This document shows, piece after piece, positions 165-13,523 of a stretch of 64,000 nucleotides of DNA. Both the position numbers and the translations under genes were made by a program. Each line of letters starts with the position of its first letter. Positions within the stretch are counted from its first letter, which is position 1. The DNA is from Klebsormidium nitens (taxonomy: Eukaryota > Plantae > Klebsormidiophyceae): assembly GCA_000708835.1 (NCBI GenBank), contig DF237109.1, forward strand, positions 64,126 to 128,125, written 5' to 3'. The notes under the pieces were generated by a model that ran no database searches, was not told the origin of the DNA, and saw nothing but the letters and a program-made list of their open reading frames with translations.

Positions 165-3100
165 TCAGAAGCGCCGACTACTGCTGCCGATCCCGTTCAC
201 AGATTCAGGGGACGAAGGCGTCTGTTTGTGGAAGCTCCCGTCGGCTCTCCCGCCGAGGACGATCTTTCGCAGCTCGTTTGCAACTTCTTCAGCGGTCACT
301 TTGGGCGGATTTGTAAAACCGACGAACTCAAACTGCGCGCAGAACCGCAACGGTCAGCTGTGGGGCCACCTCTACTCTGTGGTACGCCTTTGCGGAGCAT
401 GGTAGTAGGGATGAGAGCAGTCAGATGCGTTATCAAATTCGAAGATTGCGAAAGTAATGGCGAGTAGCATACGATGTCACTTGTCGCAACGTTGAAAACG
501 TTCTTAACCCTCTGTCAATCAATCATTTTGGAGTCTACTGAAGTCGACAAAAGCGCATCATTGGTGGTGCCATATAGGATTTCTGTTTCTCTTGCGGGAG
601 CGTAAGCGACGGCAACTGTGGAAAGGTACAAGACAGGTGCTGTGTGGGCGCACCGTTTCGCCTGTTTTGAGCTCGAGGAACACCCGGCTCTCGCGCATGC
701 CGTGCTTCTTGAACTGGATGTCCTTGATCGAGTCGTGCACGAACTGCAGGTTCTGCGCAATCAGAAAGATGCAGGTTCAGAATCTTCGACAAGTCGCCGT
801 GCTCCAAAAGTTTCCCTTGTCGAAGTACCAATTTGGTTTCTTCAAAAGCGCGCTCAGATCATACAATTCATTTGAAGGTATGCCAACAATAACGATGCCT
901 TCAATACACGCCCAAGAGTGGCACCGTCTAAGCGGAGAATGCAGCGACCTTGGAAAAAATGCTTCTACGTTTACCAGAGGATTCGACGAACTCCATCTCA
1001 GGCCTCAAAAAGAAGACCGTCGTTACGCAGTCTCCTTTGCCCGAGTTCTGGCGCTTTTGCAAATCTGTTGTGAAGAATTCACAGCTCACCTTCTCAGGGT
1101 TCTCCGGGCGGTCAAAGATGAGTAGCGTCGGTGTCGCTACCAGCGTTCCGGCCCGGTTGTGCACCATGCCGTGCTTGGAGCAGCTGTACCCTGGCGGATC
1201 AACGGAATGAGAGGGTTCAGCGGAAAGCGTGGTCTAAGCGGAAGCGCAGCGAGTGACAGAGTTACGGAGCGGGAAGCATTCTGCATATGTCATGAGCCGT
1301 TGAATGCTGAAAAGGTACGTGTCTAGCGTCGAGAGTAAGCGTGAGAAGAGGGCTCTCGAGGAGCTGCAGTTCAGACAAGTCCGAAAAACCTAACGCTTCG
1401 GTTTCTTCAAAATACTTCCAAAGCCATCAGACGGTCGGGGTGAGTTCTTAAAATAATACTGATGGATCCATAAGCCACAGCAAATGGAAGTCCGGAAAGG
1501 AGGATGTATATTCTGAATGGGCAAGTCGACGTTGGAAGGACTGGGCAGAAATGTTGTCAAACGGGAAGAACCTTACGAAGATCGAACCTTAGGATTCAAA
1601 AGCCATGACAAGCGCAAGAATAAAGCTCACTTTTAAGGACGACCTCCCGGGCCGTTTTGGTGCGCGGCACGAAGGCCCCATCGGCGGTGACTCCCCGCTC
1701 AGCCAGGTACCCCTCGAGGTGCGCCACGGTCCCTTTGACTTGCTGGAAAATGGTGGCCAGGACAATGCCCCGGTCGGCGAACTTGCTGAACTGGACGGGC
1801 TTGCGGTTGGCGCCGTAAAAGCACAAGTGGTTGCTGCGAAGTCAGAAGGGCGGGGTTTGAGAAGTATAGCTGACTGGGCATAAATCAACTGTGGTGATTG
1901 AAGCGTATGATTGGCGAGACATTGCAGACGGAAGCATCGAGCGGCTTAGCTGGCTGCGACGGAATCTGCCGTTAGAAAACAATATGACGAGCAGAGAAGG
2001 TATTCAAAGGCAGGCGAGCCAAAGCCTTCTCCGATGGAGGGTCGGCGGGCATTACCGGACCTTTGAGCTGATCCCTAACTGCGTAGATGTATCTACGTCC
2101 TACCCCTTTCGAACGGCATCATTCTCCATAGTGCTACATGACCAGGAGTTGAGACAGGGCGCCAACGCATCCGTTGAACTATTTTGTTTCTTTAATTATT
2201 TGGCTTTCCGAGAAGCTCACCTGCCCACGTTGTCTAGCCGCACAATTTTCTCGTACGCGAGCGCGACGCTGAGCCGCGCCTCGTGCGCTTTCCGCGAGTC
2301 GGGCAGCGTAGGCGCCCAGCACACGTGCTGCTTCGTTACGTACAGCGTGCCCGCCAGCTTCTTCGCGTTCCTGGGAAAACAAAAAGCTGATCACGTCAGC
2401 AAGGAAAGCGACAACGAACGCTGACGTCGAAAAATAAAGGAAGAATTGTTGTTTCGTCACACACAGCATGCAGCCAGCTTCTTCGCGGTCCTGCAGAAAG
2501 CAGAACCCGCTGACGTCAGCAAGACAAAAGGGGGCCAAATCCGGGCAGTGAGCAGGGCCGACGTCAAGCAGGTGGAGAGGAGTCAGGACAGTTGAGCGTA
2601 CAGCTTCCTCGCCGTCTGGGTTCAGAAAAGCGGACGCCATCAAAGCCAGTACAGAGAAGCGTTGACAATAGCCAAGCGAAGCGGGAGTGATGCCTGTTAT
2701 GCTTGGCATTTGCTTCACGTCTGGAGGAACGCCGCATCCCTCCTGAAGCAAAGACAACATAACGGCTGAGTTCGGAGTACCGAGCACGCTTGCTGATTTA
2801 TAATCCCCTAAATTGTTTCCACGAAAGAAAGGCCGCTGAGGTCGACGACATGAAGGTACGTTCCGTCCCCTTTTGGCAACCAACTACGTACACTCACAGA
2901 GCCATGCAATCTCTTCGAAATCTCGGACAATCCCAAATCATTCTCCAAAAGCGCCACTTAATGCTTCCTTGTCATGTCGCCCTTGAACACCCATTTGTCA
3001 CCTCACCTGCAGGGAAACGCGGCGACCATCTTGTCTTCTCTGGGCAGCCCAAAGCGCGCTTGCACCATGATATCTTTGGTCAGGTCCTCCTGTTTCTCCA

Positions 3101-6100
3101 GCAGGTCTTCCGCGATCTCGTCGTCCTTCCGTTGCCGGAGCAGGCAGATGATATCCGGCAGCTTGAGTTCCGCTTCTGTTCCGCCGGATTCCGCTCGTTC
3201 CAACTCGGCTTCGTCCTCTCGGCCCACCCAAGAGGCGGCGCTAGCCGTGCTGGACTGCCGCTGAAGATCCGGGGCACGGGACTCCTGCAGAATGATGACG
3301 TCCTTGTGACGTAAGTCTCGGTCGTGTGGGGATGTAGGTTTCGCGTTGACAGAGGGGTGAAAACGCAATTCCCCATTTCACAGCCACTTGTGCTGCTTGA
3401 TTGACTCCATGTTAGAAAAGCTACGTAACCGACAAGATTCAGACGGAGTAGTTGGTAATGAGGAATGCGAAGCCGGTTAAAATCCTACTTTCAGTTGACG
3501 CAAACGCCTAGGCTTTCCAAACATCAGAAGATACTTCGTGGACGGGCTCTTGCCTTTGCAGGGGTCTCCGGCGCTTCCCCCCAGTCGCTGCTCCGACGTC
3601 TCCGGTCGCTTTTTCCCGCCACGCTCGTTCCGTGCTCGCTGTTGAACCGGTCCCAAGCCCGCCAGTACTCGGCGCATACTTCGTGCGTGGGCGCGCGCCA
3701 CAACTGCGGGGCGACACGTGGCGTGTTGTTTGACCCTGGCAATGAGATCAATGCTTCTGAACTCAAAGGTGGCTTCCAGGGTGGAAGACAAGGATGTGTT
3801 TCACGGTGCCAGTCTCGTTGAAAATGTTTAGTTCAAACCGTACTTGGGATTCTCTTCCACGTCATGCAAGCGTTGCAGGTTCCTGAACACAAAAACAGGT
3901 CATGAATACGGACCTGCAACACTTCGGAGTGTCCTTTGGAACCGAACCCATTACGAGCTGATGCTCAGGAACGTTGTTGAGAAGATTTGGAAACAGGTCC
4001 AGACCAACTGCCCACCTCAAGGATTTTGTTTAGCCGCGCCGCGGCCTTCTCCATCTTGCTCTTCTTGAGCCCGCTCCCGCCGCCGTTGAAGTAGTCGTAC
4101 AGCACCTGCAGGGCTTCCCGCATGTTGGTGTAGTCAGCCATCGTCATCGGCTCGGGATCCTGCATCCAAATCAAGACAAGGTGGTTAGCCCTCGGATTTG
4201 CTCCGACAAGTTGAATTGAAATTCACTCCTTCAGTTGCGATGAGTCTGGGCGACGATGCCGACATCTGTGTATTTGTACTTCGCACTTCCATCAGAGAGT
4301 TTACCAGTCGGACTCTGAGTTGTCGTCATAGCTTGTCTGTGTAAAGAGGAGACACGACTACCCGACCTGCTCAATAGGAGACAGGAAAAACTTGCAAAAT
4401 CTACAAGCCAGTAAGACGACAAGGGCCGTAAGACTTGGAACTCATTTCCGGCTTCTGAACGGACAACATCGGAAGAGGGAGGGGTCAGTAAGCAGGAGCG
4501 ATTAAAGTTAGGTGCGGTTTTGCTGACCTCATCCTTGTTGAGCGCAAACTCCTCCATGCAGAAGAGCAGGCCCATCCAGATCTCTTTCAGGACCCGCCGG
4601 AACACGCGCGCGCTGAGGTAGTCGTTCATCATCTGGGAGGTAGTACAAGAAGCAGATTCAGGAGAAGCGCTGTCACAATCCTCGGCGCAGGTAAGAGGAA
4701 AAGTATTCTGGAAGTATGGGCATTTTCAAGCGTCTCGTTTTCGGTTATCAGGCGACGTCGTCTCCAATACAGACCGACATAGTAAGGAGATATCAGCAGA
4801 ACTTTATCGTAGAAAGCCACGGAACAGGAGGTAATTAGGTATGAAATGCTAGTACATCCTCCTGATGGGCAACGCAAAAGCACATTGACCTTCAAAGGCA
4901 GAATTGACACTTACCTTCAGGTGCTGATCCAGGTATGACGTCAGAGGTGCGAGTCTCTCCTCAATGGTGGCGGGCGCCTCATGGGCCTTGTCCTTGGACG
5001 GCGACTCGAAGAGGTACTGTACCTCGCTCTGCATACGGCTCTGCAACCAAGTCCGATTCGATTCAGGGAACATCAGCGAGAAAGGATGGGACGAGTGTGA
5101 ATGAAAGCAGGGAGTTAGGCTGGGTACAGGTGCGGGCGCGGAGCGCATTAACCTGTGCTTTAGTAGTTTCGATTTCTTGGTGTCCTATCCCTTTACTGGC
5201 AATGTCTGTTTGAACTGAAAACTACTGAAAGACTGAAGCGGAAAGAGGCGCTTCAAGCAGAACATCAAGAATTCCTCAGGTTGATTCTGAGAGGATCAAA
5301 GATATATTCTTTCAGCGAACCTGCTCGAGCGCGCGAAGATCTTGGCTTCAAAGACGCGCATCGAATCCCGAGAAAAGGGGACGTTCTTGAATGCTTTAAG
5401 CGCGGTTGCCTGTTGGCGTATTGCTCTGCCCTTCACCACATCGAGTAGACAAAGTCTCTGCTTTACGGATCTTTAGGAAAGGAAGAGACTTTAAGGATCT
5501 CTAGGAAAGGCTGGTCAGAAGGAAGGTGCGTCCTATGGGACGAAGGATTTCTGAAGCAGAACAAACCACGAGCTTTTCAAAGCTTGAAACAGGCTCCAGC
5601 ATCAGCACGGCTGGCTATATTTTTGCAACTTTAACATCACACAAACAAGGTGATTTTGCTGATATACACCAACCCCTTCAAATCGACAGCGCAGCCTCTC
5701 ACCTGTATGTTTTCAACGATAGACCCCACCACGTCCTCGTACGTCTGACTGAGGTAGTCTTTGAGCGCCTCAAACCCTTTCCCGACCGGATCCTCTTCCT
5801 TCCCCTCGTTCAACACCGCCCACATCCTGGGCATGAACGCCCCTCCCGACTCCCTCTTCCCCCGCTCTAGTTCCTCTGGCCGCTCCTCGTCGATCGACTG
5901 CCGCGCGCTGGACGCCCGGCTCGTGTTCGACGACCGGTTTAGGACCGACTCGTCGAGGGAGGGGCGGCCGCTGGAGGGGTCGGATTTAGAAACGGATTCC
6001 AGTTCTTCGTCCGGGAACCCTAATTCATCATCGTCTTCGTCTGTTCCTTCTTCCATGCTGACCCGCTTCGCCATCTCGCCCTGGCTCTCCCGCTTGTTCG

Positions 6101-9100
6101 TGTTCGTGGGCGCTCCGTTCGGTTCCGCTGTTCCGCTGGGGTTGGAAAGCGGGACCCCGGAAGTCCGGCGCGAGGGGCCAGACTCGACGGCCGCCTTTTG
6201 GCGGTGCAGGGTGTACGCTTCGGTCCACTTTTTCTCCAGGTTGTGCTCCAGCTGCTGCTGCTGGGTACGTACCGCGCTTAGGTTGTTCAGCTGCAATTGA
6301 CCAGGCCCGCGAGATGAGGCGACACTTTCAGAATTTAATTTCTCGCGGGCAAGTTAGGTGCTATAAAATTGAAAGTGCAACACCAATAATTACCGTCTGC
6401 AGTATGAGTGCGTGCATGTAAGAGGGCAAAGTAATCAAGAGATTCAGGTGACAAAATGATTTCCGAGAATGTGAGTCCGGAGAAACACCCTGGAAGGAAG
6501 TAGGCTCAACGACTTGAAGCAGGATTCAGTCCTGCTCAAGGTGTTCCCAAACACAATCTTTGAGACATTGCCTTCTCACTCGTTACCAACGTCTTGCAGT
6601 GAACCACCAAAAGAAAATGATCTGAAGAACTGTGAGAGCCAATAGTTGAGGCCCCGTAGAGACGCGACGCGCACCTTGACGCAGAGGCTTTTGGTGATGG
6701 AGAGCTGCGGCGGGGCCTCCTTCCGGCGCATGAGCTTTGTGAGGATGCCCTTTTCCTCCTCGCTCGGCAACGAAACCGGCAGCTCCTCCAAACACAGCTT
6801 CTCGAGCACCTGCAAACATTGATTCTAAGCTCAACAAACCGAGTCGCCAACACTGCGGACCTGATTTGGTTCTTGAATCCATGCTCATTGACAATTCTGA
6901 GTCGCCAAATGGTTTCAACCAGAGGTTGTTTTTGGATCTGCGGTCGAAAACAACCGCCGAATATGTTGGAACCGATTTTTTCTTGAGTCTATGCTCGACA
7001 ACGTTTGCGATTTGCCAAATGATTCGGAACGAATAATTTCCTCTTGGAACATCTACGAGCGGGAAAAGCCTTCGACCATCTGAATGGAAAAGCCTTCGAC
7101 CATCTGAATGGAAAAGCCTGCTCTCATCATCCGATGCGACGCGGAGGACTCGCTTGGTACAAGTGACAATGTACTACAACTGTATTTCAGCACATCCAGA
7201 CGCAATCTTGGCTCAAATCAGACAGGAGGTAGCAGCGTTCGGACCGCTGCGCTCATGATACTTTTGAATCAGCACACATTCAATCCGTCATCAAAAGCAA
7301 GTGCTGTTTACCTGCGCGTAGGTCTGGATGGCGGCGCAGACCCCGGCCTCGGCGGCCGCCATGTAGTCGCGGCCGAAGGCCAGCTGCAGCACGCGGTTGT
7401 GCATCTCGTCCGTCACCTCGTACACCAGCATGTACAGCTCTGGGACAAAAGGAGAAGCATCAGAATTCAAGGTTTAAGATTCAGCGTTCGGGTTTGAATC
7501 ATAGGCTTTCAGTTTCTTATTTTGTGCAAGACATCTCGCCTTAATGACGTCCTCCGATATTTGATAGCACTGTTGTTGCAACGGTGGAACCGCACTCTGT
7601 TTCTTCTTTCCAAAAAGGGACTATGACGAAAAGGTGAAGTGGTCGAACTCTTGCTTTACTCTGGGCGCAGATGCGCAACCAAAAAGCTCACTCCAGCTTA
7701 TTGTAATAAGAAAGGTCGGAGGCTTGCGCCTCTACTACGATCTTACAGCTTATCACACTCGCCGATAGTCTAATCATAACGCAAGCAGAACTCAACAGAT
7801 GATTGGCTCAGCCACCCGAAACAGAATGTCGTCAGCCGTTTTCGACAATCTCGCAAGTTTCTCAATGTTGAGATTCGACCTTAGCAGGTACGAAGAAGCT
7901 AAAGTGGGATATTGGCTTCAATCGTTCCACTCCTCGGAAACGAAGCCACTCCTCCGCCGCTCCACCGAGTGTGTCTCCCGTAGCCCGTATTTCTCGTTCA
8001 TGAAGCACTCCACACACCGGACTCCAAAATGAAACTCAGATGGTTCAAATACTTGTGAGTATTCCTCACCGATGATGGAGAAGCTGAAGAGCGCGCTCTT
8101 GGCCGCGGAGACGGGCTCCCACTTCTCGGTGCACACAACGGAGCTGATCCAGTCCATCATGCGCGGCCGCGTCTCGGCCATCCACGCGACGATGTGCTCG
8201 TGCAACAGCGACTGCACGTCCAGCCGCGGCTGCCGCACGCCCAGGCCGTCCAGCACCGCGTGCAGGTCCTGGAAGGCGACCACCAGGTCCTGGAATAGAG
8301 GGGAGTGGTCGCCCAAGTTTGAGATTGAGGAAAGAGAATCAGATTCTGATTCCGTTCTCCGGAAAGGAAGGCGGGGAACTTGGTGTTCAGCCGGGGCTGC
8401 CGCACGCCCAGGCCGTCCAGCACCGCGTGCACCTCCTGGAAGGCGATCAGCAGGCCCTGGAACAGGGAAGAGAGGTCGCCTAAATCAAGGTTTAAACGAA
8501 GGGGACTGCATTCTAAGGGAAGGCCGGGACTGCACGTCCAGCCGCGGCTGCCGCACGAAGGGCCGTTCGGCAGGAAGTGCAGCTCTTGGATGGGGACCAC
8601 CACCTGGAACAGCGAAGAAACGTAGCCGGAGCAATTGAAACTGGGTTTGGTTGTCAGGCTGGTGGATGAAGAATGCTCAGGAGGACGTAAAAGGAACCGA
8701 ACAACGCGAACCCGTCACGAGCTTTTACTAGTCTTGACTGCAACGCATAGAAAGCTCCCAACCTTCGACCTAGAAAAAGCACTGCACGCACCGCGGTCTC
8801 CACGTCATGACACTTCACAAGCGCGAGCAGCCAATATTCCATCACCTTCCAGGCCCGCCCGCACTTCCTACTCTCTCCGTATCTCACTCCATCGCATAGC
8901 CGTTCGGCCAAGCTCTTTCTCCTCCTTCGAAGGAAGTGCTCCGTCTCCCAACCTGTGCAACTACCGCCTGACGCACCCGTGGAGTGTTTCCGAGCGCTCC
9001 GCAAACTATGTACGACCTACCTTATGCTCCCGGGTGAAAGTTTTCCCGGGCGCCGCCTCGACGTACTTCTTCACCGCGGTCGACAGCGCCTTGTAGTACA

Positions 9101-12100
9101 CGTGCGCGGCTGTCGGCACCAGGTCCACCTCTTCCGGGAAAGACGGCGCGAAATGCGCGTCCAGGTTCGCGATATCCGCTTGCACGGCCGCGGCCGCGCG
9201 TGCGAGCGACGCTGGGTCGAGGACCACCGCGCTGGCGGGCGCGGGGCCGTCGGAGGCGAAGAGGTGCGCCTTGAACCGGTCCTCGCAGCACTTCTGCGGA
9301 ATGACGGAACGACGGAACAGAAAGCTGAGCGCCGCGCGGGATATTTGATCGGAGCGACGCGCCTTTGTCAAAATCGAGCAGCAGAATGGACAAAGAATCG
9401 AAGCAGTATCGAAGCAGTATCGAAACGACAATCTACCGCTCTCTTTTAGGCACTCGTTTTCCGATACTTTCTTTTTCCAAGTCTGCAACAATCACGGACT
9501 TGCGAAGAACGAAAGAAGCACACGCCTTCGCACGCTTAAAATGTTGGGAGAACAAGCAACTTGGAAAGATTCGACAGCGAACTTAAGCCATCAACTTGAC
9601 TCTCATTCCATTCAAATCTCTGCGGGCCTCTCCTCCGCTTTTATTACTGGAGTTCTATAATTGCTTTCCTTCTCCTAATCTGAATCGACGTTGTGCTTCT
9701 TAATCGAATGACGGTGCTTGAACGCGTCCCAAAACCTTCAGGTTCTACATCCCAAAACTTGCAAGCTCTGATCAACAGACGCTCTGGCGTACCTCGACCC
9801 AGCTCCTGACGGGGATGGCAATCTTCTTGACGTCCAGCTCCCACTTGAGCAGCAGGCTCAGCAGCTGCAGCACCAGCTCCAGCGCCGCCGGCGGTTCATT
9901 TCGGGGGAACGCCGTCTGGAATGACGTCACCGTGCTCGTGGCGGGCTCCATCAGAACTGCAGATGGGGTGTGCCGGAACTCTCGTTATACGTGAAACTGA
10001 CACCTCTGATTTAGTGTGCGCCACTTCTGCTGTCTGACCAATTTGCTCTGTAAGCAATGATGCCGTTTGATAGCTTACAACGGAGCGGTGATTCGAACCC
10101 GTCGTATTGCGCGGCAGGCTTCGAGCAGATGCATGATTGAGGAGAAGATTGCCTGACAACGTTTAAAAAACCACTCTTCAAACTGTCAGAAATGCGGGCC
10201 ACGGTTTGACCCCGAAATCTCAACCAGATGCCGGTTGAGGGCCTCTCCAGTGTGCCAAAGAAAGTCGTTCATAAACGAGGAGCCAACCCCTTAGCAACAA
10301 TCTTCTGGATACGCGATCTACCGTCTGTTCTTTGCTTGCGGTTCACACATCCGTGCCGCACACAATACTGCAAAGATGTCCACCTGTTTCCTCTTGAGGC
10401 CTTTCGAGCTTTGAAGCGATTGATGAGGGATTGCCTACCCGCGATGGCCTCCCCGTGCAGGTCCATCTCGCGCTTCGTCAGCAGCCCCTTTTGCGCGAGG
10501 TAGCTGACGTCTGTCAGCTGCGCGACCGTCGCGCGCAGGTAGGGCGGGCCCGTCTGGTACCTGTGCGCGAGCTCGCCCAGCATCGCAAGCGAGCAGCGCG
10601 CGCCGCGGATGTGGAAGTGGGACTCGAAGAGGTGCAGGATCTCGGACCAGTGTTGGTTCAAGGAGAAGGACTCGCCTGCGGGCGGGGACGAGATCTGGGC
10701 GTCAGTTGACAGTTCTTTGAGCCAACCGAAGGTCTGTTGTATAGTCTGGTACCAAGAGAATATTTGCTAGTCCCTTTGGATATCAGTGTTCTCCTCCAGG
10801 TTTTTGAGGACTGGAATGGAAAAGCCTAGGATCTGCACGACTTATCTTGAAGAACTTCTGTGCACAATTTCTCCTCCAGGTTTCTGAGGTCTGGAATAAA
10901 AAAGCCTAGAATCTGCACGACTTTTCTTGAAGAACTTCTGTGCGCAATTTCAACACGGAAAGAGGCACACTCAAAAGTTTAGCGGACGCCGCGCATTGTC
11001 ATGCCTTTCGTTGAACAGCCCGCTCAATGCAGATTCCGGTATCTTCTTTCAAAGAGAAAGAGGATTTTCCTGAAACTTCTCGAAGGACTCTTGTATACAA
11101 TCCCAATCGTAGAGACGTGCACGTCAAGGCTTAGCAAACGTGACACATTGATTTTTGAGAGACCCGCTCCATCAAACTTCCGTACCCTTTTTGAAAAATG
11201 CTCACCAACTGTATCTTCGTTCTCTTTCCACGCCACTGCCAGCAGGGCATCGTACGCCTTCTCGACGTCAGCCACCGGTATCCTTGCCGCATCCCGCCCG
11301 TCGGCGTTCTTGCGGCGGTGGTGCGTTGCAGTGCAGACGACCTTCAGCTGGACCTGGCTCTTCATGGGGCGGCCTTTCCAGTCGCGGAGGGCGACCATCT
11401 TAGAGGGGACCGTGACTAGAGTGGCGCCTTTCGGGGAGCCGGAGGCAAGCAGGTCCTGGAAGGTGAGGGATCCCTCGCCGATGAAGTCGTCCGTCACCTG
11501 GGCCGACTGGGAAAGAGGGCGAAGAGCAAGTTTAGGATACTTTCACGGCATTTTCGGGCGAAATTCTCGAAAGGCTAAGCGAACCGCAAGTGGAGTGCTG
11601 ATTGCAGCCTAGTCGCCGATGCAACATTGTTCACAATGCAGACCTTCCAAGACACTGTTCAAATCAAGAAGACTCTCCCTCTTGCCTTCCTATATTGCCC
11701 AAGCTGGCTACCCTGCTTTGACGAGCCCTCTTTCAAAGAGAAAAAGTACAGGACACGGGTAACCAAAACGAAGCCATCCGTTTCTGAGGATCTACGATTG
11801 CTCACACCCACTGAGACGTTTATATTTTACAAAGAGCCTTCCTTGACGTTCCTGCGTCCAGATTGGTACCCTCACCTCTGGCCTCGTTGACTTGCGAATC
11901 TTTCTCGATGCTAGCTTTCCAGCCGCATTGACTGCTGTGGCCGGTAAAGTGGCCACCCGGTTCATGGTTCCCATGATGCTCATCGCCCCATGCTGCGGAT
12001 CTAGGTCGTCCGAGTCCCAAACCTCGACCAGAACCTCGTCCTTAAGGCTAGCCGCGTGAAAGACCGGCAGCTTTTCCTTCCATTCTGGGTTGAGCGAGTC

Positions 12101-13523
12101 GTTAACCACTCTCGTTTCGGCCCTGACCGGCGCTGACCCGTCTGAGACGAGGGTCACAGTACAGTATGGGTCGCATTTACTGGCCTTTACTGCCTTGCAC
12201 GTGCACAGGTCCTTGAGGATGCCCCCCATCGTGAAGTCGGTTGCTTTGATGTCGCTGCCTGACAGGACCTCGACTGAGAGTGTGCCAATAAATCCGGGGA
12301 GCGCTTCTTGTTTCCGCAGGATGGAATCGTAACTTTCGAGCTCGATCTTCTTCCAGGCTTTGTATGCGTCAAAACTCTCGAAGTCGGTCGGCAGGTGCAG
12401 GCCTGCGTCCGCTTTGAGTGCAGCTACGCGGGCCTTGATGTCTGCAAGGAGATGTTCGGAAAGATGTTGAAAGGCGTCAGCGAAAAGCAAAAAGAAGAGC
12501 TTGAAACGACTATAAGAATAACACCAAAGGTGTCTTTGGGACCGGAAGCGGTGTGCCATGTTCGAAAAGTAACTCACCGGCGGGCTTCAACAAAAGTACC
12601 AGCTTCTTTACAGTCGGGTCTCCTTACTGGCTACCTAAATCAATATGCTACTGTAAGTCTTGCTTGCAGGGAATCGGCTGCACTTGCAGTTCAAAGTAAT
12701 TTGCATGAGAATGGCTTAATCGAATCACAAAGTCGCATTGTTCAATCCCACTTTACCATGTCTTAGGTGCGAGAGGTGCATGAAAGCAGACTTGATGAGT
12801 GTCAGAGGTCTTGAGAGAGATTTTTGTTCGAGGGCATAGAACATTACGACGATCAAACTAAAGCGGAATATTCGAATAAAAACTCTAAAGTTCATCTAGT
12901 TAACAAAACTTGGGGAGAATGCAGTCAACTTCAAAGGCAAGCTAACCTGGTATGCGGAAGGAGAGCTCGTTCTGAACCTCCACCACTGCCTCTTGGTGCG
13001 CTTTAGTGTCAAAACCAAAGGCTCTCCTGAGAAACTCTGCAGCCGCGTAGCACTCTTCAATCGGCTTAGCACTCTCCTCCTGTGCAGCAAACACTGCCCT
13101 CAAGGCAGCTCTGTACACGCCCGCCATCTGATTCTGGTCCACCTGTTTCCTTGTTGAGAAAGCTGACGCAGTGTCGGCACCGCCACTCTGATATTGGCTT
13201 TGCAAGCTAGCAGTCTTTGGCTCTGTGAGACGATCCCCATCCTGTTTCCTGTCTTGCCAGACTATCTTAGCACCCTCAGGTCCGCTATCTGACACGCTGC
13301 CCCACTTGTAGTTGCCACCACCCTCTTGCAAACTCGCTGCGGGGCTTTCTCGTCGCCCTCCCTTTCCATTTAGTCCTTCTGATGTGTGCACTTCATCTTC
13401 ATTATCTGACGAGTCTAGATCGATGTCTGCCAATGTCAGCTCGATTCTAGGCCTGGCTGTACCCTGAATGTCTCCATCGATGATGGAAGCTGCCGAAGCA
13501 GCTATTTTGGCGGAAGGATCCAT
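165..13523 (-). CDS. Munc13/UNC-13-like protein (C2 - MUN/MHD1-MHD2 - GRAM - GRAM), 20 exons, about 1570 aa
   Basis: Phase-consistent hand model: 13523-12947, 12441-11876, 11506-11206, 10675-10439, 9956-9793, 9293-9021, 8289-8070, 7439-7312, 6809-6675, 6290-5703, 5040-4915, 4632-4528, 4159-4016, 3703-3554, 3284-3007, 2370-2221, 1833-1631, 1190-1090, 752-654, 332-165 (4713 nt, divisible by 3). C2 motifs: DIKATD..KCDPYCTV..NDSLNPEWKE..EVWDSD..DDFIG. MUN motifs: LCVKLNNL, RLAPLTSYLDQHL, VFRRVLKEIW, LYDYFNGGGSGL, IICLLRQRKDDEIA. GRAM motifs: FGLPREDKMVAAFPC..GTLYVTKQHVCW and RYSCSKHG..AGTLVATPTLLIF. Confidence 0.85.
2350..2750 (-). repeat. Intronic array of duplicated 3' splice site/exon-start cores (Munc13-like intron 15)
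   Basis: True acceptor cccag|GAACGCGAAGAAGCTGG (AG at 2371-72). Copy ctgcag|GACCGCGAAGAAGCTGG at 2491 (+120 bp) with a shared upstream cttgctgacgt. Diverged copy cccag|ACGGCGAGGAAGCTG at 2616 (+125). Possible fourth AG at 2743 (+127). Confidence 0.75.
5461..5510. repeat. Short imperfect tandem duplication (about 28 bp x2) in an intron
   Basis: ctttacggatctttaggaaagg / ctttaaggatctctaggaaagg. Confidence 0.6.
6819..7120. repeat. Degenerate intronic repeats plus a 24-bp tandem repeat
   Basis: Three diverged ttga.tc.a.gctc..caa..gagtcgccaa units (about 6819, 6870, 6980). gaaaagccttcgaccatctgaatg occurs x2.3 at about 7063-7118. Confidence 0.6.
8219..8612 (-). repeat. Three tandem copies of acceptor plus the first about 70-80 nt of exon 7 of the Munc13-like gene
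   Basis: ttccag|GACCTGGTGGTCGCCTTCCAG (exon start 8289), ttccag|GGCCTGCTGATCGCCTTCCAG (8456), ttccag|GTGGTGGTCCCCATCCAAG (8603). All three share CGGCAGCC.CGGCTG.AC. Confidence 0.85.
9398..9426. repeat. 11-bp tandem repeat
   Basis: atcgaagcagt atcgaagcagt atcgaa. Confidence 0.6.
10789..10951. repeat. About 80-bp tandem duplication in an intron
   Basis: ttctcctccaggttt.tgagg.ctggaat..aaaagcctag.atctgcacgactt.tcttgaagaacttctgtgc.caattt occurs twice. Confidence 0.85.

Follow-up and report, generated by a model that had tools for sequence, protein, structure and literature searches.

A gene of 20 exons occupies the minus strand between 13523 and 165 of a 64,000-nucleotide stretch of the Klebsormidium nitens genome (assembly GCA_000708835.1, contig DF237109.1, positions 64,126 to 128,125 of the forward strand), the whole of which is referred to here as the window. 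The exons add up to 4704 nucleotides, encoding 1567 amino acids and a stop codon at 165-167, and the G+C content of the gene region is about 52%. An earlier note on this DNA, made from the letters alone, had proposed a phase-consistent 20-exon open reading frame (ORF) of about 1570 amino acids, and the model presented here, in which all frames are open, bears this out. We consider it likely that the locus holds a single expressed gene whose product is a soluble protein, peripherally bound to membranes, of the unc-13/Munc13 family (MUN domain, CATCHR type; Pfam PF06292/PF25761), combining a C2 domain, a MUN domain and two PH-like modules of GRAM type.

The gene model draws on open frames, splice signals, joints seen in RNA and conservation across species. 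Every one of the 20 exons continues the reading frame of its predecessor without interruption, 18 donors are GT and one is GC, and the acceptors are AG throughout. From the N-terminus, the predicted protein would consist of a region of 190 amino acids, a pre-C2 helix, a single C2 domain, a MUN domain with its MHD1 and MHD2 parts and a disordered insert rich in serine and acidic residues, and two tail modules. The exons, in the order of transcription, are the following.

Exon 1, 12947..13523, minus strand: start codon and N-terminal region of 192 amino acids; the ATG and the conservation with the relative both begin exactly at 13523; no Pfam family.
Exon 2, 11876..12441, minus strand: pre-C2 helix and the larger part of C2; contains ATD, a 15-residue insertion, CDPY and WDSD, and the loop-3 insertion begins here.
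Exon 3, 11206..11497, minus strand: end of the C2 domain (DDFIG) and linker; 77% amino acid identity to the relative.
Exon 4, 10439..10675, minus strand: N-terminal helical region, conserved in the relative; borders set by splice sites.
Exon 5, 9793..9956, minus strand: helical region, 87% amino acid identity to the relative; borders set by splice sites.
Exon 6, 9021..9293, minus strand: helical region, 74% amino acid identity to the relative; weak hint of Sec6 (CATCHR), E 0.08.
Exon 7, 8070..8289, minus strand: MUN core (MHD1 region), from ESM Atlas MUN clusters, hhalign and Pfam TPR_PATROL1 (E 0.16).
Exon 8, 7312..7439, minus strand: MUN; 83% amino acid identity to the relative.
Exon 9, 6675..6809, minus strand: MUN; 98% amino acid identity to the relative; weak colinear hhalign match.
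Exon 10, 5703..6290, minus strand: MUN helices around a serine/acidic low-complexity insert of about 110 amino acids; donor at 5703 confirmed by RNA.
Exon 11, 4915..5040, minus strand: start of MHD2; both borders confirmed by RNA.
Exon 12, 4528..4632, minus strand: MHD2; both borders confirmed by RNA.
Exon 13, 4016..4159, minus strand: MHD2, or MUN subdomain D, with the YF.GGG.GLKK motif.
Exon 14, 3554..3703, minus strand: helix and basic linker, conserved in three algae; followed by the GC-AG intron.
Exon 15, 3007..3284, minus strand: linker, the LLRQRKDDEIAEDLL stretch and the putative first strand of PH-like module 1 (FGLPREDK..FPC); 86% and 72% amino acid identity in two relatives.
Exon 16, 2221..2370, minus strand: core of the predicted PH-like, GRAM-type module 1 (GTLYVT..HVCW).
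Exon 17, 1631..1833, minus strand: end of module 1, linker and putative start of module 2; 84% and 79% amino acid identity in two relatives.
Exon 18, 1090..1190, minus strand: core of putative module 2 (YSC..GTLVAT..LLIF); 88% amino acid identity in both relatives.
Exon 19, 654..752, minus strand: putative module 2; 79% amino acid identity in both relatives; borders set by splice sites.
Exon 20, 165..332, minus strand: putative end of module 2, short tail and stop codon at 165-167; 83% and 75% amino acid identity in two relatives.

The gene is expressed. RNA contigs from two public runs of one study match the window with 0 differences and skip introns that have CT..AC ends on the plus strand, that is, GT..AG on the minus strand. 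The run type is labeled as RNA by guess, and the RNA origin follows from the contigs themselves because intron-less contigs can come only from spliced RNA. One contig joins exons 10, 11, 12 and 13 (5703/5040, 4915/4632 and 4528/4159), and another joins exons 17 and 18 (1631/1190); since the 15-letter loose end of the latter, read in reverse complement, equals the last letters of exon 16 and so joins 2221 to 1833, exons 16, 17 and 18 lie on one RNA. Five introns are confirmed by spliced RNA contigs in this way. A third contig covers 165-308 and continues beyond 165 into the 3' untranslated region. The single transcript that the earlier note wished to see confirmed is recovered for exons 10-13 and for exons 16-18, with no contig over exons 13-16.

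Two junctions that the note had named agree with the model. The one between exons 15 and 16 (3007/2370) is the top-scoring splice pair available, and the one between exons 14 and 15 (3554/3284) delimits the GC-AG intron, the donor of exon 14 being GC (AAG/GCAAGA). The GC donor of this intron (3285-3553) is present in all three algae compared (the window and contigs L003 and L004), and in L004 the donor of exon 15 is likewise GC.

Conservation in related algae agrees with the exon structure. An exhaustive search with a profile of the C2 exon yielded a single close fragment (P0001, 80% identity), located on an 85-kb metagenome contig of the Joint Genome Institute (JGI) that derives from a related alga. 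The contig of this alga (L001-L003) contains 20 of 20 exons in identical order, with 55-98% amino acid identity, and the introns do not align. On Logan contig L004, which comes from a third alga at a greater distance, exons 11-20 are colinear with those of the window at 64-91% identity. Between the window and the closer relative, the ratio of nonsynonymous to synonymous substitution rates (dN/dS) is 0.05-0.36 in the 19 exons for which a value can be computed (in exon 20, dS is saturated), 0.07-0.16 in the tail exons, and 0.16 when summed over exons, at dS 0.93. The 20 exons are under purifying selection in the comparison with the related alga, as are exons 11-20 in the third. Exons 1 and 10 have conserved ends and a variable middle.

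The identity of the C2 domain, which precedes the MUN exons and is encoded by exons 2 and 3, is certain: exon 2 matches the Pfam C2 model with E 1.8e-11 and 44.6 bits, against a cut-off of 22. The acidic motifs listed in the earlier note lie where it placed them, with ATD, CDPY and WDSD in exon 2 (12441-11876) and DDFIG at the start of exon 3 (11497). Among structures in the PDB, the top matches of exon 2 are the Ca2+-dependent C2 domains of protein kinase C (PKC) beta, alpha and gamma. In the alignment to the Ca2+ ligands of PKC, CDPY corresponds to SDPY and WDSD to WDWD, with both aspartates at ligand positions; ATD and DDFIG fit the other two ligand positions by motif only. The domain contains two loop insertions, one of about 44 residues between WDSD and DDFIG, which the earlier note had recognized, and one of about 15 residues between ATD and CDPY, which it had missed. 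The earlier note describes a loop-3 insertion as typical of the C2A domain of Munc13-4 and BAIAP3. Both algal insertions are nearly 100% identical between two algae, and because they are near-invariant despite a dS of 1.8 for exon 2, we conclude that they are functional parts of the domain. One of them includes a cysteine-rich stretch (CTCK..KC) and the other, between WDSD and DDFIG, ends in a basic one (RKIRKSTRPE), within 12150-12260 and 11876-12010, respectively. When compared by hhalign with a 10-member family of chytrid C2-MUN proteins, exon 2 aligns to residues 60-221 with 95% probability and E 2e-8, an alignment that covers both the pre-C2 helix and the C2 domain.

We take the prediction of a MUN domain with MHD1 and MHD2 to be sound. 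The domain is spread over about 12 exons; domain calls were made exon by exon, and although no single exon of this region rises above a Pfam cut-off, independent lines of comparison agree. The nearest ESM Atlas clusters of exon 7 are MUN clusters (PF06292; scores 0.95, 0.93 and 0.92; 202-214 features in common); clusters of MHD1, PATROL1, Sec10 and Vps53 come next. Aligned to the chytrid family by hhalign, the exons map in order: exon 3 to residues 205-235 (weak), exon 7 to residues 537-586 (E 1.2e-4), a stretch called MUN by Pfam, exon 9 to residues 679-691 (weak), exon 11 to residues 930-960 (E 0.0055), exon 12 to residues 962-992 (E 0.35) and exon 13 to residues 1002-1045 (E 3e-4), so that exons 11-13 are contiguous on the MHD2 part (930-1045). 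A hidden Markov model (HMM) of the chytrid family, run against all 1985 ORFs of the window, placed exons 2, 13, 7 and 11 at ranks 1, 2, 3 and 5. With a profile of exon 13 (48 amino acids, three algae), six of the seven best distinct PDB sequences were MUN structures of Munc13-1 (E 0.018-0.07), the YF.GGG.GLKK motif aligning with YFHAGGVGLKK of Munc13-1. The Pfam model TPR_PATROL1 is matched below threshold and colinearly by exon 7 (positions 4-37, E 0.16) and exon 13 (positions 303-345, E 0.001 to 0.15 across the three species, with 0.001 in a relative). A BLASTP comparison of exon 6 with the chytrid protein P0113 yielded noise, and PDB searches with exons 7, 10 and 12 yielded no match or noise.

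The earlier note took the stretch LLRQRKDDEIA (LLRQRKDDEIAEDLL) in exon 15 (3284-3007) for the last MUN helix, in line with a resemblance that it saw between DDE(V/I)A and the C-terminal helix of Munc13; in the hhalign comparison of exon 15 with the chytrid C-terminus, this stretch was not aligned.

Beyond the MUN region, exons 14-20 give no C2 match with Pfam in any of the three species. The first of two candidate modules in this tail is split over exons 15-17. By reading, it runs from the end of exon 15 (FGLPREDKMVAAFPC) through exon 16 (GTLYVTKQHVCW ... IVRLDNV) to the start of exon 17 (HLCFYGANRKPVQFSKF) and appears to follow the GRAM pattern from the opening motif to the last strands. A PH-like signal is observed for exon 16, which matches, below the Pfam thresholds, PH_TFIIH in all three species (E 0.004 to 0.021), GRAM (PF02893) in two (E 0.011 and 0.086, profile positions 28-52), the GLUE domain of Vps36 in two and Voldacs in two; we take all of these families to have the PH fold. 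The nearest ESM Atlas clusters of this exon are Vps36 GLUE (0.90), the PH domain of BBS5, GRAM (0.87) and bacterial PH/GRAM, and its ten best clusters all belong to one family or clan, a result of lead grade. There is thus moderate support for module 1 as a PH-like module, probably of GRAM type. The second candidate module comprises the end of exon 17 and exons 18-20 and, again by reading, repeats the same pattern (EVVLK-YSC...GTLVATPTLLIF...FVHDSIKDIQ...FLELKTGETFEFVGF); on the strength of this motif reading and of strong conservation, a GRAM-type module 2 is plausible only. Local HMMs of exons 16-20 found no match among the retrieved proteins. The order C2-MUN-GRAM-GRAM put forward in the earlier note therefore stands as one gene with C2, MUN and a PH-like tail; its first GRAM domain stays below threshold, and its second has no match by any tool. 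Likewise, of its suggestion that tandem GRAM domains replaced a C-terminal C2, the absence of C2 after MUN holds, and the GRAM identity is supported in part, by sub-threshold matches within the PH clan.

Several results speak against one gene with a Ca2+-type C2 domain, a MUN domain and two GRAM-type modules. In the RNA contigs of the two public runs, no read or contig connects exons 13 to 16 directly. The GRAM match of exon 16 reaches 16 bits, against a Pfam cut-off of 23.6, and PH_TFIIH scores slightly better; Vps36 GLUE, not GRAM, is the closest ESM Atlas cluster of this exon; and its profile retrieved only noise from the PDB, the matches being designer 'Pizza' propellers. Exons 17-20 have no family match in Pfam in the three species, and the signal of an internal repeat is weak, hhalign pairing only AGTLYVT of one module with AGTLVAT of the other. 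The insertions in loops 1 and 3 of the C2 domain could, moreover, alter or abolish Ca2+ binding. The absence of an RNA contig covering exons 13-16 would fit two neighboring genes, C2-MUN and GRAM-GRAM, wrongly fused in the model. We rejected this reading: three algae conserve exon 15 as one exon, in which both the LLRQRKDDEIAEDLL stretch that may end MUN and the opening motif of module 1 can be read, and a module 1 starting at exon 16 would lose its first strand. The phase is maintained without a stop codon across the model, the splice pair 3007/2370 is strong, and the order and spacing of the exons are alike in the three algae. Because exon 15 encodes the MUN-end stretch together with the GRAM-type opening motif, two separate genes are very unlikely.

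The tail itself allows another view, in which the architecture is the same and the modules are of a different PH-like type (GLUE/Vps36-like, TFIIH-p62-like or BBS5-like), docking a protein, ubiquitin or a 3-phosphoinositide rather than acting as GRAM lipid sensors. PH_TFIIH does score a little above GRAM in all three species, and GLUE is ahead of GRAM in the ESM Atlas; nevertheless, F-G-L-P-x-E-D-K..F-P-C followed by G-T-L-Y-V-T..H-V-C-W agrees, by reading, with the GRAM consensus from its beginning as far as the core, the match to GRAM spans the expected profile positions and every family match of exon 16 is weak, and we regard this view as unlikely. A somewhat stronger case, although one we still judge to be the less probable, can be made for a trafficking tether of the type of PATROL1 or of fungal unc-13-like proteins, which would work constitutively and independently of Ca2+, bring cargo such as pumps or wall synthases to the plasma membrane and use C2 as a lipid anchor only. 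Such a tether would suit a streptophyte-type alga, the TPR_PATROL1 matches of exons 7 and 13, the large insertions in both Ca2+ loops, and the fact that the closest full-length relatives found, the chytrid C2-MUN proteins, have a C2 domain without the aspartate set. In the algal C2 domain, however, all aspartate motifs are kept and the loops are almost invariant at the high dS of exon 2, which points to a conserved ligand site, and PATROL1, unlike the algal protein, lacks C2.

Comparison with characterized proteins places the predicted product within the Munc13 family and sets it apart from the types compared below. MHD1 and MHD2 are common to all Munc13 proteins, including Munc13-4 and BAIAP3 (PMC3849599). 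The algal protein is like Munc13-4 (UNC13D) and BAIAP3 in its N-terminal C2 domain, followed by MUN with MHD1 and MHD2, and in the Ca2+-type aspartate motifs of C2. It differs from them in that their defining C-terminal C2B is absent and two putative PH-like, GRAM-type modules are present instead. It also has an additional N-terminus of 190 amino acids, insertions in loops 1 and 3 of C2, and a long disordered insert in MUN. Chytrid unc-13-like C2-MUN proteins (SPPG_05530 of Spizellomyces, P0151; and P0113) are the only full-length relatives found, P0113 by way of the pre-C2 helix and C2. They have the Pfam domains C2, MUN (PF06292) and TPR_PATROL1, and the pre-C2 helix, C2, MHD1 and MHD2 of these proteins are colinear with the alga in the exon-wise hhalign comparison. 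Unlike the algal protein, they stop shortly after MUN and have no PH-like tail, and their C2 domain has no aspartate set; between the MUN halves (about residues 720-880 of P0113), they contain a C2-like stretch, not called by Pfam, where the alga has the serine/acidic insert of exon 10. For Munc13-1 (MUN structures 3SWH, 4Y21, 5UE8 and 7T7C), the likeness lies in exon 13, which corresponds to a conserved pair of helices with YFHAGG.GLKK, close to where the solved domain ends, a match that is near-significant and holds for one algal exon only; Munc13-1 differs in having C1, C2B and C2C domains and a calmodulin site. PATROL1 and the unc-13-like proteins of plants are MUN-type proteins of the green lineage, like the algal protein, and are linked to it by the colinear matches of exons 7 and 13 to TPR_PATROL1. 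PATROL1 is not known to carry a C2 or a GRAM domain, and because C2 is present, the algal protein is not of PATROL1 type. CAPS/CADPS combines a C2 domain, a PH domain binding phosphatidylinositol 4,5-bisphosphate (PIP2) and an MHD1 region in one priming factor, with PH placed before the MHD region and no MHD2 (PMC3849599). The algal protein likewise unites C2, a predicted PH-fold, possibly lipid-binding domain and an MHD1 region, and differs in having two such modules after a complete MUN domain. Plant C2-GRAM proteins, such as OsNOP of rice, contain C2 and GRAM in one protein (PMC8875736), with no MUN between them.

The earlier note knew of no description of this architecture, and our searches point the same way. 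In the literature searched, we found no description of a MUN domain combined with a GRAM domain and no paper on Munc13 in Klebsormidium, and Munc13 and the GRAM domain were mentioned together only in unrelated reviews. The search of a library of 1.84 billion representative proteins with the C2 exon returned no full-length protein of the C2-MUN-GRAM type; apart from the close fragment, the matches were generic multi-C2 proteins and P0124, which has a similar pre-C2 part. Searches started from the chytrid protein and its alignment reached only 10 fungal proteins (0 of 10 with a GRAM domain), and two metagenome scans, with exon 7 and exon 15 as queries, produced no match.

Some further features of the locus concern its introns and surroundings. 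Within 8218-8557 and 2353-2523 of the window, introns contain decayed copies, in tandem, of the 5' portion of the exon that follows, acceptor site included: two copies of the start of exon 7, with 87% and 72% identity, and one of the start of exon 16, with 78%. In the relative, such copies occur at equivalent places (7878-8159 and 17970-18317 of L002) and, in addition, ahead of exons 4, 10 and 18 and behind exon 15. They may act as decoy acceptors or be remnants of tandem duplication. Intron 3 contains an 80-nucleotide tandem pair with 91% identity (10789-10948). On contig L001 of the relative, a tubulin-tyrosine-ligase-like (TTL) gene (294-3622) lies upstream of the Munc13-like gene.

Munc13-type proteins are thought to be rods that bridge two membranes by means of a lipid-binding domain at either end and, in doing so, open syntaxin. 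The MUN rod of the algal protein would probably serve as a tether and as a chaperone of SNARE assembly. One membrane would be held by C2, another by the tandem PH-like modules at the opposite end, and the rod could bridge a vesicle to its target membrane; Ca2+ would act through C2, and the tail would read lipid identity. The fold of module 2, the binding of Ca2+ and lipid, regulation by Ca2+, SNARE priming and a role in exocytosis are all features that we infer. We tentatively suggest, as a possibility that we hold with less confidence than the domain architecture itself, that Klebsormidium-type streptophyte algae retain a Ca2+-type, Munc13-4-like priming or tethering factor that is absent from land plants, and that a tandem GRAM unit took over the membrane binding of C2B.

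Such a change would be domain shuffling inside a known family and, in that respect, only moderately surprising. If the proposal is true, the protein would be a natural domain swap and would offer a direct test of the idea that the MUN rod needs a membrane anchor at both ends; the replacement of the rear C2 by PH-like, GRAM-type modules would show that the type of anchor is interchangeable. It would also put a Munc13-like factor with a C2 domain, probably responsive to Ca2+, in the algae related to land plants and would bear on the changes that regulated exocytosis underwent as land plants arose, the known MUN proteins of which, of the PATROL1 type, have no C2.

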